Shown in pieces: positions 26,058 through 35,537 of a DNA stretch of 64,000 nt. Positions within the stretch are counted from its first letter, which is position 1. The number at the start of each line of letters is the position of its first letter. The translations under genes and the position numbers were made by a program. This DNA comes from Rebecca billardiae RCC1528 (Eukaryota; Protista; Haptophyta), in assembly GCA_965240325.2 (NCBI GenBank), contig OZ251230.1, positions 186,001 to 250,000 on the forward strand, written 5' to 3'. Below the pieces are notes generated by a model. It made no database searches and had not been told where the DNA came from. It saw only the letters and a program-made list of their open reading frames with translations.

Positions 26058-26799
26058 CTAGCCGGTCGCGGAGCGCGCGCTCGCCGCCATCTGCTGCAGC
26101 AGGCTGGCAATCAGCGCCGGGCTGATGGGCATCGCGTGCTGCTCGTCAGCGCCGCCGCCGCCGTTGGCCCTCTCGCCAAACGAGCCGAGCCCCGACTCGT
26201 CGGCCGCGCTGCCGTCCGAGTCGCCGTCGAGCTGCTCGACGGTGCTCACGCGCGCGCCCGACCGGCCGCGCGACGCCAGGTACGCGCGCAGCGCCTCGCC
26301 AAAGTCGTCGGTCGTGATCGCCGCGCGCCCGCGCCGCACGGCGGTGAAGGCGGCCTCGTTCACCAGGTTTGAGAGCTCGGCGCCGGAGAAGCCGGCGGTG
26401 GACGCGGCGACGGCGTCGAGGCGCACGCCGTCGGCGAGGACGACCTTGCGCACGTGCACGGCGAGGATCGCGGCGCGCTCCGTCGCGTTCGGCAGGCTGA
26501 GTCGCACCACCCGGTCGAAGCGCCCTGCCCGCGCGCACAGCCGCGCGCGCGGCGAGGCGCGCCGCGCCGCGTGCGGGCGAGCGTGCGCGTGAGCGCGCGC
26601 GCATGCCACACACATGCACACACACGTGCGCTCGCCAGCGCGACGGTGCGCGCGCGCGCGCGCGCGCACCGGGGCGCACGAGCGCCTCGTCCAGCAGCGA
26701 GTACCGGTTCGTCGCGCCGACCACGAGCACGCCGGCCGCGGGCGTGAAGCCGTCCATCTCGGCCAGCAGCGCGTTCACCGCGTGGTCGTGCTCCTCGCT

Positions 26800-30497: not shown

Positions 30498-32321
30498 TCA
30501 CGGTGCCACGGAGACGCGCACGGGTGCCGGGCGTGTCGCTTCCTGCTGCCCTCCCTGGCGCGCAGCACGCTCTGCCATCATCGCCGCAGCCGCCGAGCTG
30601 TCCAGGGCCCGGGGGAAGTCCTCCTCCTCCTCCTCCTCCTCCTCGCCGTCCTCGTCGTCGCCCGCTGCCGCGGCCGCGCCGCTCCGCTCAGGCGCCGCCG
30701 CCTCGTGCGGAGAGCCCGGCCTGGCCGGCGCAGCCTCCGGCTCGGCCGCGGACGCAGCCTGCGCCGACGACGGTGGCAGGCCGCCTGCGCCCTGAGCCGC
30801 GGCCGCCTGCCCGCCCGCGTCGACGCGCACGCGCATGGGTGGCGCGCGCTCCGCCTCGGCCGCGGCAGGCGCGGCGGCCGCGGCGCTGCCGGCCAAAGAG
30901 TGCGCCGCGCCGCCGCCGCCGCCGCCACCGCCGCCGCCACGCTCCGGCTCGGCGGTGCGCGCGGCGCCGGGCTCTCGCTGCCGCGCCGCGGCTGCCTCGC
31001 ACATCTGCGCGAACACCCCCCGCAGCTCGGCGAGCACGCCCTCCCCCGTGAGCGAGCCCTCGTACACCGACCACTCCAACTCCATCGGCGCCGCGCTCGA
31101 CTGTGCGGGCGCGGGCGCGAGCAGCAGCACAGCGCCTGCAGAGCGCGCCAGGCCCACGCCCAGCCGCGCGCGCAGGTCGGCGTCGGCGGCCGCGCTAGCG
31201 TGCGCGAGGAGCACCCGGCCGTGCTCCGTCGTCGCGAGCGCGTGCCACGCGTCCGACGGCCCGGCGTCCGGCTCGTCCGCGAGCAGCAGCGCGCAGCCGC
31301 ACGGCGCGTGCGTCGAGACAGCGCGCGCGAGCGCCTCCAGCTGCTCTGCGCCCGGCTCGAGCGCGGCCGAGAGCTTGGGCACGTGCGCGAGGAGGCGCGC
31401 GCCGAGGCGCTCGGCGGAGAGCTCGCCGGCGTACACCTCGCTGCCATGCGCCGACGCGATGAACACGCTCGGCAGCGCGCGCACGCCGTACTCGAGCGCG
31501 ACGCGCGGGTGCGCGCCGCCGTCGAGCGCCGCCACCGTGGCCAGCTCGGACAGCGCCGCGCCCACGTCCTCGAGCACAGCGCCGAGGGCGCGCGAGCCGG
31601 GCGCGGCGTCGGGGCGGCCGTCGAAGAAGCCGACGCAGAGGACCACCGTCGACTCGTCCTCCGCCAGCGCCGCGAGCTCCGCCGCGTCCGCCGCGACGTG
31701 CACGGGCGAGTGCGTGCCGAAGAGGGGCGGCTGCGGCGGCTGAGGCGGCTGCGGCGGCTGAGGCGCGCGCGCGCCTGCGCCGCCGCCGCCGGTCGCGGGC
31801 GCGCGCTGCCCGGCGAAGCGCGACTGGTGCAGCCGGCTGCCGCGCGGGCCGCCCGACCCCGCGCGCCCGCCGCCGCCCGGCCCCGCTGCCCCCGCGCCGC
31901 CCGCCTCCTCCGCCGCCGCCCCGTCCCCAAAGCCAAAGACTTGACGAAACAGCGCCTCCGGCTCGGTGAAGACAAACACGCGCGCGCCGCCGCCGGGCGA
32001 GCCCGCGGTGGGCGCGCCGGGCGCGCCGGCCTCGAGCCGGCGCAGTCCCTCCTCGCCGTGCGCGTCGTACACCGCGCGCTTCTCCCGGTCCGAGAGCACC
32101 TCGTACGCGCGCGAGATCGAGTGGAAGCGCGCGGCCGCCTGCTCGTCGCCCTTCGCCTTGTCCGGGTGGTGCTGCAGCGCGGCGCGGCGGTAGGCCTGCT
32201 TGACCTCGCGCTCGCTCGCCGTGCGCGGCAGCGCGAGCGCCTCGTACAGGTCCTCGCCGCGCGCGCCAAGCGCCGCCAGCGCACAGAGCGCCGCGGCAAA
32301 AAGGGACGTGCGCGACCCCAT
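30498..32321 (-). CDS. ER-type DnaJ protein with signal peptide and redox-inactive thioredoxin-like domains
   Basis: Signal peptide, DLYEAL..VKQAYRRAALQHHPDK..AYEVLSDREKRAVYD, thioredoxin-like VAALDG..YGVRALPSV without CxxC; ATG at 32321. Confidence 0.85.
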   Translation of the reverse strand: MGSRTSLFAAALCALAALGARGEDLYEALALPRTASEREVKQAYRRAALQHHPDKAKGDEQAAARFHSISRAYEVLSDREKRAVYDAHGEEGLRRLEAGAPGAPTAGSPGGGARVFVFTEPEALFRQVFGFGDGAAAEEAGGAGAAGPGGGGRAGSGGPRGSRLHQSRFAGQRAPATGGGGAGARAPQPPQPPQPPQPPLFGTHSPVHVAADAAELAALAEDESTVVLCVGFFDGRPDAAPGSRALGAVLEDVGAALSELATVAALDGGAHPRVALEYGVRALPSVFIASAHGSEVYAGELSAERLGARLLAHVPKLSAALEPGAEQLEALARAVSTHAPCGCALLLADEPDAGPSDAWHALATTEHGRVLLAHASAAADADLRARLGVGLARSAGAVLLLAPAPAQSSAAPMELEWSVYEGSLTGEGVLAELRGVFAQMCEAAAARQREPGAARTAEPERGGGGGGGGGGAAHSLAGSAAAAAPAAAEAERAPPMRVRVDAGGQAAAAQGAGGLPPSSAQAASAAEPEAAPARPGSPHEAAAPERSGAAAAAGDDEDGEEEEEEEEDFPRALDSSAAAAMMAERAARQGGQQEATRPAPVRVSVAP

Positions 32322-32763: not shown

Positions 32764-34185
32764 TCATCGCGCGCTGCCTTGCCCCGCGTCCGCCGCGGCG
32801 TCGCAGATGCGCGCGAGCGCCTCGTCGAGCGTCGCGCGCGCGCACGCCACGTTGAGGCGCACGAACGCCTCGCACGGCCACGGGCTGGGCGCCGCCGCCG
32901 AGCCGCGCGGCGCGAACTCGTCTCCAAACGAGGGCAGCACGCGCGCGCGCTCGATGAACCAGCGCCGCAGCGCGACGCGCCCGTCGAGCCCGTGCGCGGC
33001 GCACAGCCCGGCGCAGTCGACCCAGAGCAGGAAGCCCGCGTCCGGCACCGCCGCGCGGAACAGCCCCGGCGGCGCGCGCCGCTCGAGCGCGCGCGCGCCG
33101 TGCTCGAGGTTGGCGCGCATGAACGGCAGCAGCGCGCGCAGCCACGCGTCCGTGCCGCCGCCCTCCTCTGCGTATGCGGCGCGCAGCGCGGCCGAGGCGA
33201 AGGCGTTGCCGAACGTGCCGTGGTGGTGCTCCACCGCCGCGAGGTACGCGCGGCGCTCGAGCTCGCGCGGCAGCACGAGGAACGCCGCGTGCAGCCCCGC
33301 CGTGTTGAACGCCTTGCCCGGGCCGCTCACTGTCAGCACTGACGGCTGCTCCCGCGCGGGGAGTTCGGACGCGGCGAGCGCGGCGGGCGTGTGCGCGTGC
33401 GTGCCGTGCGTCAGGTCGGCGTGCAGCTCGTCCGAGAGCAGCGGCACGCCGTGCGCCGCGCACAGCCGCAGCAGCGCGTGCAGCTCCGCGCGCCGCCACA
33501 CGCGCCCGCTCGGGTTGTGCGGGCTGCACAGAATCAGCAGCCGCACGCGCGGCACGCCCTCGCCGCCCGCGCCGAGCTGCGCGCGCAGCACGGGCCAGTC
33601 GATCTCGACGGTGCCCTCGGCCAGGCGCAGGTGGTGCGCGACGAGCGTGCGCCCCTCCCCGTGCACGATGTCCTGCAGCGGCGCGTACAGCGGCGTGAAG
33701 ACGAGCACGCCGTCGCCCGGCCGCGTGAGCGCGCGGACGACGTTGCATGCAGCCGCGACCGCCGACGGCGCAAAGACGAGGGCGTCGCGCGGGACGTGCC
33801 AGCCGTGCCGCCGGCCGAGCCACGAGCGCACCGCGTCCCACATCTCCTCCGGCTGCACCGTGTACCCGTACACGCCGTGCGCCGCGCGCCTGCGCACGGC
33901 CGCGGCGATCTGCGGCGCGCACGGCAGGTCCATGTCCGCCACCCACATCGGGATGCACGCCGAGGCGCCCTCGCCGTAGAGGGCGTCGAGGAGGCCGGCG
34001 TGGTGCTTCACGGCGTCCGTGCCCGATCGGTCGATCGGCGCCGCGCGCAGCGAGAAGGGCTCGCGCCGCCGCCGGTGAGCGCGCCACGCGGCGAGCGCTG
34101 CGGCCGCGATCAGCGCGCCGGCGGCGGCGACGGCTCCGCGGAAACTTCGCGGCAGCGGCGGAACGCCTCCATCGGCTCGAGGCAT
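32764..34185 (-). CDS. MalY/PatB-family PLP-dependent C-S lyase (cystathionine beta-lyase-like) with N-terminal signal anchor
   Basis: IPMWVADMD, HGVYGY, LCSPHNPSGRVW, SDELHADL, PGKAFNTAGL (PLP lysine), FVRLNVAC; the only in-frame ATG upstream of the domain is at 34185. Confidence 0.9.
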   Translation of the reverse strand: MPRADGGVPPLPRSFRGAVAAAGALIAAAALAAWRAHRRRREPFSLRAAPIDRSGTDAVKHHAGLLDALYGEGASACIPMWVADMDLPCAPQIAAAVRRRAAHGVYGYTVQPEEMWDAVRSWLGRRHGWHVPRDALVFAPSAVAAACNVVRALTRPGDGVLVFTPLYAPLQDIVHGEGRTLVAHHLRLAEGTVEIDWPVLRAQLGAGGEGVPRVRLLILCSPHNPSGRVWRRAELHALLRLCAAHGVPLLSDELHADLTHGTHAHTPAALAASELPAREQPSVLTVSGPGKAFNTAGLHAAFLVLPRELERRAYLAAVEHHHGTFGNAFASAALRAAYAEEGGGTDAWLRALLPFMRANLEHGARALERRAPPGLFRAAVPDAGFLLWVDCAGLCAAHGLDGRVALRRWFIERARVLPSFGDEFAPRGSAAAPSPWPCEAFVRLNVACARATLDEALARICDAAADAGQGSAR

Positions 34186-34319
34186 GCGCGCACCTGGCCG
34201 GAGTGCTCGCGCAGGCAACCCTCCCACGCAGCGTATTCCGTCTCGCACTTCGCCACGTGCTGCGGCTGCGCGTCGACCCTCGACTCGGCGCAATTCTCGC
34301 AGACGGGCGCGTCGGGCAT
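34110..34319 (-). CDS. Small twin-CX9C (CHCH) mitochondrial intermembrane-space-type protein, 69 aa
   Basis: C-ETEYAAWEG-C and C-LEPMEAFRR-C, additional CENC, strongly GC3-biased codons; overlaps the MalY/PatB start by 76 nt in another frame. Confidence 0.75.
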   Translation of the reverse strand: MPDAPVCENCAESRVDAQPQHVAKCETEYAAWEGCLREHSGQVRACLEPMEAFRRCREVSAEPSPPPAR

Positions 34320-34361
34320 GACAAGACGAGATCGACGAGACAAGCGAGGCCCCGGTTTATT

Positions 34362-35537
34362 CAGGGGCTGGTGCTCGCAGCGAGGCACTCGCGGTGCGAG
34401 TGCGAGCAGGGCGCGAGCGCGAGTGCGAGCAGGGCACTCGCACTCGCGCTCGCAAGGCGCCGATCCGGCCCAGCGGGCTTGCGAGTCAACTCGCAAAGGT
34501 ACTCGCAAGGTGCGGTCTAGCGCGAGTATGCGAGTTGGCGCGAGCAGAAGTGCGAGTCCCTGGGCGGCCTCGTGACCGCCTGCACGGCAGGCGAGTCACA
34601 AAGCGTCAAAGCCTCGCTGCCCCCGCCCAGGGCGGCAAATGGCGAGCTCATCGGCGGCGCCGGTCGCTTCGGCGCCTGCGTCGGCGCCGGCTGCCGAGAT
34701 CACCGTCTGGTCGCTGTCGAACCAGCGCGGGGTGATCGACCCGGCCTGGCTCGATCTGCCCCCCAACGGCAAAGGTGTCTCGCTCTTGTGGACGCACGTC
34801 CACCCCATCTCGCAAGCGGCGCCGACCGACTTCTCGTACGTTCAGGTGGGCAGTCAGTCGAGCAACCCGAAGCTGTACACGCACGTGTGCGTCATGCCGG
34901 GATGCGGCCAGCGCTTCACGCTCCCCCTCGACAAGGTGCGCTCGAAGGGGGGCAAGTCGGTCTTCACGATCACAAACGCGGGCAACCACCTGAAGACGAT
35001 GCACCCGCTGACCGAGTACAGCAAGAAGGCCTCCATCAAGGCGGACGAGGCAGCGCTGGGGGCGAAGCGGACCATGCAGCAGGTGGGCATGTCGGTGAGT
35101 ATGCCCGTCGAGAAGCAGCTCAAGCAATCGGGCCTCCTCGCTGCGGGCTTCAAGAAGGTGTCGCGCGCCGACAAACAGCTGGCGACGCAGGCGCGGTGGC
35201 AGGGTGGTCAGGGCGGCGGGTCGGGTGTAAGGCATGCTCTAATAGGGCCAAATAGGGCCAAAAAATTTCTTCGCCTCAGGCCGGCGGGGCCCCGGGGGAG
35301 GCCCCCCGGACCCCCCGCTGGGCGTGTCCGGGGGCTGCGCCCCCGGACACGTTGCCAGTTGGGACTCGCACTTTGCGAGTTGGGACTCGCACTTTACTCG
35401 CACTCGCACTCGCAGCCGCCCATTCCGCCCAGTGGGCCTGCGAGTTCAACTCGCAGTGCACTCGCAAAGTCCCCTCAAAAGTGCGAGTGCGAGTTCACTC
35501 TACTCGCAGCCGCGGAAAGTGCGAGCGACGGTCCCTG
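34362..35537 (+). mobile_element. Internally deleted hAT transposon (1176 bp), 8-bp TSD GGTTTATT
   Basis: GGTTTATT at 34354-34361 and 35538-35545; imperfect 18-bp TIR CAGGGGCTGGTGCTCGCA / CAGGGACCGTCGCTCGCA; more than 10 GCGAG/CTCGC subterminal motifs per end; BED-finger ORF inside. Confidence 0.93.
34639..35200 (+). pseudogene. N-terminal fragment of hAT transposase (BED zinc finger)
   Basis: SLLWTHV...CVMPGC...TITNAGNHLKTMHP matches the BED pattern; no DDE catalytic domain follows. Confidence 0.8.

Follow-up and report, generated by a model that had tools for sequence, protein, structure and literature searches.

An overlapping twin-CX9C microprotein frame and PatB-like lyase frame in the haptophyte Rebecca billardiae: a candidate bicistronic locus conserved in related lineages

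Green algae provide established examples of bicistronic nuclear genes, and so do a few genes of animals. On a single nuclear mRNA, the animal gene MOCS2 encodes MOCS2A and MOCS2B in overlapping, differently framed ORFs, with an overlap similar in size to that described below; leaky scanning is the accepted route for MOCS2, and the two products are subunits of one enzyme. In green algae, leaky scanning on bicistronic nuclear mRNAs has been shown experimentally and is tuned by the context of ORF1 and by upstream ATGs; in the loci tested there, ORF1 encodes TOM22 or OST4, and at some loci the stop codon of ORF1 and the start codon of ORF2 overlap (PMC11291117). A full-text literature search returned no relevant report of bicistronic genes in haptophytes.

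Two overlapping frames on the minus strand

The window (the whole stretch of haptophyte DNA that was analysed, 64,000 nt in length) carries on its minus strand a small ORF of 69 codons (ORF1), running from an ATG to a TGA, and a longer ORF for a lyase (ORF2) that begins inside it and is read in frame +2 (that is, −1) relative to ORF1 (Table 1). The layout had been proposed in a first-pass annotation, and its elements were all recovered: the small ORF with two exact CX9C motifs, the 76-nt overlap, the one usable ATG of the lyase lying in another frame inside ORF1, and a lyase frame that runs into a hydrophobic stretch followed by RAHRRRR. Within the 200 nt searched upstream, including 43 nt also carried by contig L001 (below), AUG1 is the first ATG. 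AUG2 is the sole ATG of the lyase frame upstream of the catalytic fold: no further Met occurs in this frame before residue 75, which already lies within the conserved fold, and the PatB profile begins at residue 51.

Table 1. Positions of the features of the overlapping locus in the window.
Feature	Position	Strand	Basis or remark
ORF1, 69-aa CxxC + twin-CX9C (CHCH) microprotein	34110..34319, stop included	-	ORF reading, GC3, family, AF2 model
AUG1 (ORF1 start)	34317..34319	-	context GTC-ATG-C, -3 G
ORF2, 473-aa PatB/MalY-type PLP C-S lyase	32764..34185, stop included	-	Pfam, TIGR04350, PDB 6qp3
AUG2 (lyase start)	34183..34185	-	wobble A of Ala45 (GCA) + TG of Cys46 (TGC) of ORF1
Dual-coding overlap, 76 nt	34110..34185	-	CHCH helix 2 and Pro-rich tail / lyase N-tail and start of Ala-rich segment
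Ala-rich hydrophobic segment, then RAHRRRR; lyase residues 17-41	34063..34137	-	hydropathy, homologue comparison
SNP versus contig L001, C to T (minus strand)	34138	-	A61V in ORF1 tail; synonymous (R16) in lyase
Divergent intergenic region, 319 nt, to opposite-strand BED-finger ORF	34320..34638	.	presumed shared promoter, GCGAGT-type repeats

An assembly indel joining both frames, for which the first-pass annotation had allowed, was ruled out by an independent Logan contig (L001; 1,738 nt) that corresponds to window positions 34362-32625; because this contig is collinear with the window, with the one SNP of Table 1 and no indel or gap, an assembly error does not account for the two frames. The end of L001 at 34362 is ~30 nt below a first repeat block (34394 onwards), so that its 5′ end adjoins a repeat-rich stretch; direct and inverted repeats rich in GCGAGT/ACTCGC (34394-34560 and 35314-35500) flank the opposite-strand BED-finger ORF (34639 onwards). 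The next same-strand gene downstream (30498-32321, minus strand; 607 aa) lies 443 nt past the lyase stop, and its product has a signal-peptide-like start, a J-domain-like motif (HPD) and then long low-complexity runs.

L001 was also considered as a transcript, and this was rejected. A contig of a sister run (L017) retains the 146-nt GT-AG intron of an AAA-ATPase gene, and contig L011 retains a 93-nt GT-AG intron in its lyase; because these introns are kept, the Logan contigs are probably DNA, and those matching the locus are most likely genomic, so that L001 is not an mRNA. In an exact look-up of 11 other ORFs of the window, only one was on record, on L017. The AAA-ATPase intron (26525-26670, minus strand; L017:153-298) consists largely of (GC)n/(GT)n and splits a motif of the protein between RPG and RFD, and a prokaryote-style gene call begins a 185-aa 'protein' inside it.

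The extreme GC3 of local coding regions allows a reading frame to be read from composition. GC content by codon position (1/2/3) is 0.71/0.57/0.89 in ORF1, 0.80/0.57/0.95 in the lyase and 0.84/0.62/0.92 in a neighbouring DnaJ gene, and a coding-type pattern of this kind was not found in the flanking intergenic DNA. Across the overlap the GC3 of the ORF1 frame stays at 0.92, and the lyase frame attains its usual GC3 only from about 34125 onwards. Taking frame, GC3, family membership and structural model together, we judge that ORF1 is a genuine coding sequence.

The two encoded proteins

The six Cys residues of ORF1 (positions 7, 10, 25, 35, 46 and 56) form a CxxC motif followed by C25-x9-C35 and C46-x9-C56, with a 10-residue loop between the latter two. 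The Pfam CHCH profile (PF06747) matches ORF1 with an E-value of 1.2e-5 at 25.7 bits, against a gathering threshold of 27.2 that is exceeded by its family members P0124, P0127 and P0126 (35.0, 30.5 and 27.7 bits, respectively). A HMMER search of 1.8 billion representative proteins gave seven matches (best E 7e-10), the closest being P0121 (80 aa, 51% identity, E 7e-10) and P0122 (73 aa, 47%, E 2e-9). A word search with ORF1 gave no match, nor did metagenome DNA scans with the single ORF1 protein or with a three-sequence alignment.

The concern that the small ORF might have no homologues, raised at first pass, was dispelled by a profile search, which brought the number of other family members to 18, with lengths of 71-167 aa. 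Ten positions are invariant in the 19 sequences (C7, C10, P19, C25, C35, G41, Q42, C46, F53 and C56), and the neighbours of ORF1 in the Atlas feature space are small CHCH-type proteins throughout. One member carries a name given by its source, 'expressed unknown protein [Seminavis robusta]', from a diatom. At all three loci checked, the members are stand-alone genes with no lyase downstream, and stand-alone relatives terminate just past Cys4.

An AlphaFold2 model built on the family alignment places helices at residues 26-38 and 43-60, with block-mean pLDDT of 91, 88 and 84 over residues 31-60 and low confidence both around the N-terminal CxxC and in the C-terminal tail. As modelled, the core is a confident CHCH helical hairpin with one CX9C motif per helix. 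Among solved structures the profile matches best the second CHCH domain of CHCHD5 (2lql, E 2e-4) and next p8-MTCP1; the top Foldseek rows for the model are CHCHD1, COA6, p8-MTCP1 and Mic19, all with weak E-values, as expected when just 38 residues align. The second domain of CHCHD5/Mic14 (2lql) and CMC4/p8-MTCP1 (1ei0, 1hp8) share with ORF1 the two CX9C motifs, the 10-residue loop and the helical hairpin, whereas the ORF1 family adds a GQ loop and, as invariant features, an N-terminal CxxC and a Pro. These comparisons indicate that ORF1 belongs to a real CxxC plus twin-CX9C family that has no name, to which Pfam assigns only the generic CHCH label and of which the S. robusta protein is the single named member.

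Judged from the motif, the product would be a CHCH protein of the intermembrane-space, disulfide-folding type, without a presequence. The family was also tried as a CxxC-type Mia40 analogue, since a candidate family of that type exists in diatoms and oomycetes (PMC3097184); it was rejected as such, those candidates differing from it in spacing and sequence. A Mia40-like role for the CxxC motif of ORF1 is at most a weak lead. The sulfhydryl oxidase Erv1/ALR is the oxidase of the intermembrane-space disulfide relay, and N-myristoylation signals are known for the CHCH proteins Mic19 and Mic25. In a single observation from S. robusta (GCA_903772945.1, L016:2021-3387), the family member P0136 lies 340 nt downstream of an Erv1/ALR gene on the same strand. 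Three stand-alone relatives (P0140, P0142 and P0144) begin with MGN, a possible N-myristoylation signal.

The family also bears on whether ORF1 could be a regulatory upstream ORF that throttles translation of the lyase, with a peptide that is itself functionless. An upstream ORF overlapping AUG2 would necessarily lower initiation there, and the dN/dS of ORF1 is not clearly below 1, its Nei-Gojobori estimate of 0.5-0.95 coming from a method that is uninformative at a GC3 of ~0.9 and under extreme codon bias. A functionless peptide is nevertheless hard to reconcile with ten invariant positions, with stand-alone members at the three loci checked (among them the diatom protein annotated as expressed) and with a modelled hairpin of high confidence; we regard this reading as improbable.

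The lyase matches Pfam Aminotran_1_2 (E 4e-32) and the Bacillus PatB structure 6qp3 (E 4e-69). Against TIGR04350 it scores 319.3 bits, short of the cut-off of 340, over profile positions 5-382 of 384. The Lys of its GPGKAFN motif aligns by eye with that of xPxKTxN in homologues, the Schiff-base Lys. On this evidence it is a fold-type I PLP enzyme, best termed PatB-like. It shares the full-length PLP fold and the Lys motif with the bacterial PatB/MalY lyases (6qp3, 1d2f) and differs from them in a eukaryote-specific N-terminal extension that is hydrophobic and then basic. The Ala-rich residues 17-34 have a Kyte-Doolittle mean of 2.08, and over 17 residues the segment is moderately hydrophobic (mean 1.9-2.15); it may serve as a signal anchor or as a signal peptide.

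In 10 of the 11 eukaryotic lyase homologues read (~40% identity), the exception being P0013, the N-terminus consists of a short tail followed by a hydrophobic stretch and then a run of basic residues; this run is R-rich, or K/R in P0004. A CHCH domain was found in none of these 11. Because 10 of them start alike and none has a CHCH domain, initiation at AUG2 would give the N-terminus typical of the family. The closest lyase on record outside the linked clade described below is P0004 (41% identity), from the EukProt transcriptome of the dinoflagellate Gymnodinium smaydae.

The same overlap in related loci

The two closest relatives of ORF1 also lie at lyases. On contigs L007-L010 (80-aa ORF) and L011-L012 (73-aa ORF), which encode P0121 and P0122, the small ORF stands directly upstream of a same-strand Aminotran_1_2 lyase and overlaps it by 85 nt in L007 and 94 nt in L011; gene order, relative frame and the position of AUG2 are common to these loci and the window. 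Conservation of the linkage in related species, which had been suggested at first pass as a check, is therefore seen. L007 and L011 are most closely related to each other, so that the three loci amount to about two independent lineages, not three. The lyases of all three loci are mutual nearest relatives and are split from the other eukaryotic group with support of 96/97, although one long branch, from bacteria, shares their unresolved set. Upstream of three distant lyase loci (~40% identity; L002-L006) no CHCH ORF was found, and the upstream neighbours there are on the other strand. The linkage is clade-specific, since these distant homologues lack it.

In all three lineages AUG2 straddles two codons of the small ORF, taking its A from the wobble position of the codon that precedes the third Cys and its TG from the Cys codon itself: GCA-TGC (window), CTA-TGC (L007) and CTA-TGT (L011). 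A-ending codons account for 3.0%, 5.6% and 3.2% of the codons of the respective loci, GCA for 6% of the Ala codons in the window, and CTA for 1 of 166 Leu codons in L007 (0.6%) and 2 of 59 in L011 (3%). This rare wobble A is kept though the encoded amino acid varies (Ala or Leu), a directly legible signature of selection on the internal start codon. The codon before Cys3 in three lower-GC stand-alone relatives is CCG, TCT or GCC, so that no ATG is formed there. A second difference concerns the residue after Cys2: all 16 stand-alone members have Met there, and the three linked ones, and no others, have Leu. With this change an in-frame AUG ahead of AUG2 is lost.

At the nucleotide level no segment is better conserved among the three lineages than the overlap (identity of 0.70-0.81, against 0.63-0.69 before it), as expected if both frames are constrained. 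The Pro-rich C-terminal tail of the small protein is exclusive to the lyase-linked clade and is the other-frame reading of the Ala-rich segment of the lyase. Because of this correspondence, we infer that the lyase would have extended its N-terminus by overprinting the CHCH gene at its 3′ end. A conserved dual-coding locus is well supported by these comparisons, and we consider it highly probable.

Frame conservation might also be expected from a single fused protein, in which the CHCH domain and the lyase are joined through a small intron or through programmed −1 frameshifting. The lyase frame is indeed +2 (−1) in all three lineages, and GC-rich DNA such as this offers many formal GT/GC-AG pairs of suitable length: 83 frame-fusing candidates were listed, none of them supported. 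However, the constant frame is a direct consequence of how AUG2 is built on the codon of Cys3, and any candidate intron sparing the CHCH domain would cost the lyase some or all of its conserved hydrophobic segment or of its basic cluster. No canonical slippery heptamer was seen by eye in the codons of the overlap. The stop of ORF1 is moreover retained in all lineages, the stand-alone relatives finish shortly past Cys4, and the 11 other lyases read have no CHCH domain. A fused product is thus very improbable, and the two frames are best read as two proteins.

Gene callers treated these loci poorly, in line with the expectation at first pass that automated annotation would miss the small ORF: ORF1 was not called on L001, and the lyases of the relatives were started at GTG (L007:4156 and L011:536), downstream of the conserved ATG that a three-frame reading brought out. 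The locus in this way exposes a failure of gene callers that amounts to systematic mis-annotation.

Initiation at the two start codons and comparison with known systems

In the arrangement that we propose, one mRNA would carry both ORF1 and the lyase. Ribosomes initiating at AUG1 would produce the microprotein, and those that scan past it would reach AUG2, 128-158 nt further on, and produce the lyase by leaky scanning. With AUG2 located 76-94 nt ahead of the ORF1 stop, reinitiation is excluded, and the routes left are leaky scanning and an internal transcription start. Between AUG1 and AUG2 there is no ATG in any frame over 131 nt in the window, 155 nt in L007 and 125 nt in L011; the joint chance of this in three lineages, from the local ATG density, is ~0.05. 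The 5′ leaders must be short, because the divergent upstream genes begin 89-319 nt away (equivalent spacers of 122 nt in L007 and 89 nt in L011).

The bases at −3 give a mixed picture: L007 and L011 have T at AUG1 and G at AUG2, whereas the window has G at AUG1 and C at AUG2, so that its AUG1 has the better −3 base, contrary to simple leaky scanning. This last point would suit two separate transcription units, with a lyase start site inside ORF1 between AUG1 and AUG2 and an overlap that reflects genome compactness, and so would the very short intergenic spacers between divergent starts. Such a promoter would, however, have to persist inside a coding stretch of 128-158 nt, and the loss of the family-invariant Met, together with the ATG-free interval in all linked lineages, would be left unexplained. 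We hold separate units to be possible but on the unlikely side. A single mRNA with leaky scanning is the best explanation of the locus and, from the sequence evidence, the probable one. Of the bicistronic reading put forward at first pass, the parts that stand are that both ORFs are coding and that their same-strand overlap is conserved with sequence signs of the leaky-scanning type; the shared mRNA itself keeps the standing of a probable explanation.

A tighter relation between the two products may also be imagined. The CHCH protein and the lyase could form a functional unit, in which the targeting or anchor segment has been overprinted and co-translation would fix the proportion of the two proteins at the same organelle; this idea is speculative and we think it unlikely. 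If true, it would mean a new sulfur/redox partnership in haptophytes, of a redox-active intermembrane-space microprotein with a membrane-tethered C-S lyase, in cysteine or persulfide handling. To our knowledge no functional tie links the CHCH protein and the lyase, unlike the two subunits encoded by MOCS2.

Set beside the green-algal polycistronic loci (PMC11291117), the present locus is alike in pairing, on the same strand, a short ORF1 with a longer ORF2 read in a different frame, in the few ATGs before ORF2, and in an ORF1 of a kind that in those loci is often a small organellar protein. It differs in belonging to a haptophyte and in the nature of the overlap, which is here 76-94 nt of true dual coding and not a mere meeting of stop and start codons; in this respect it offers a clean and conserved case of dual coding.
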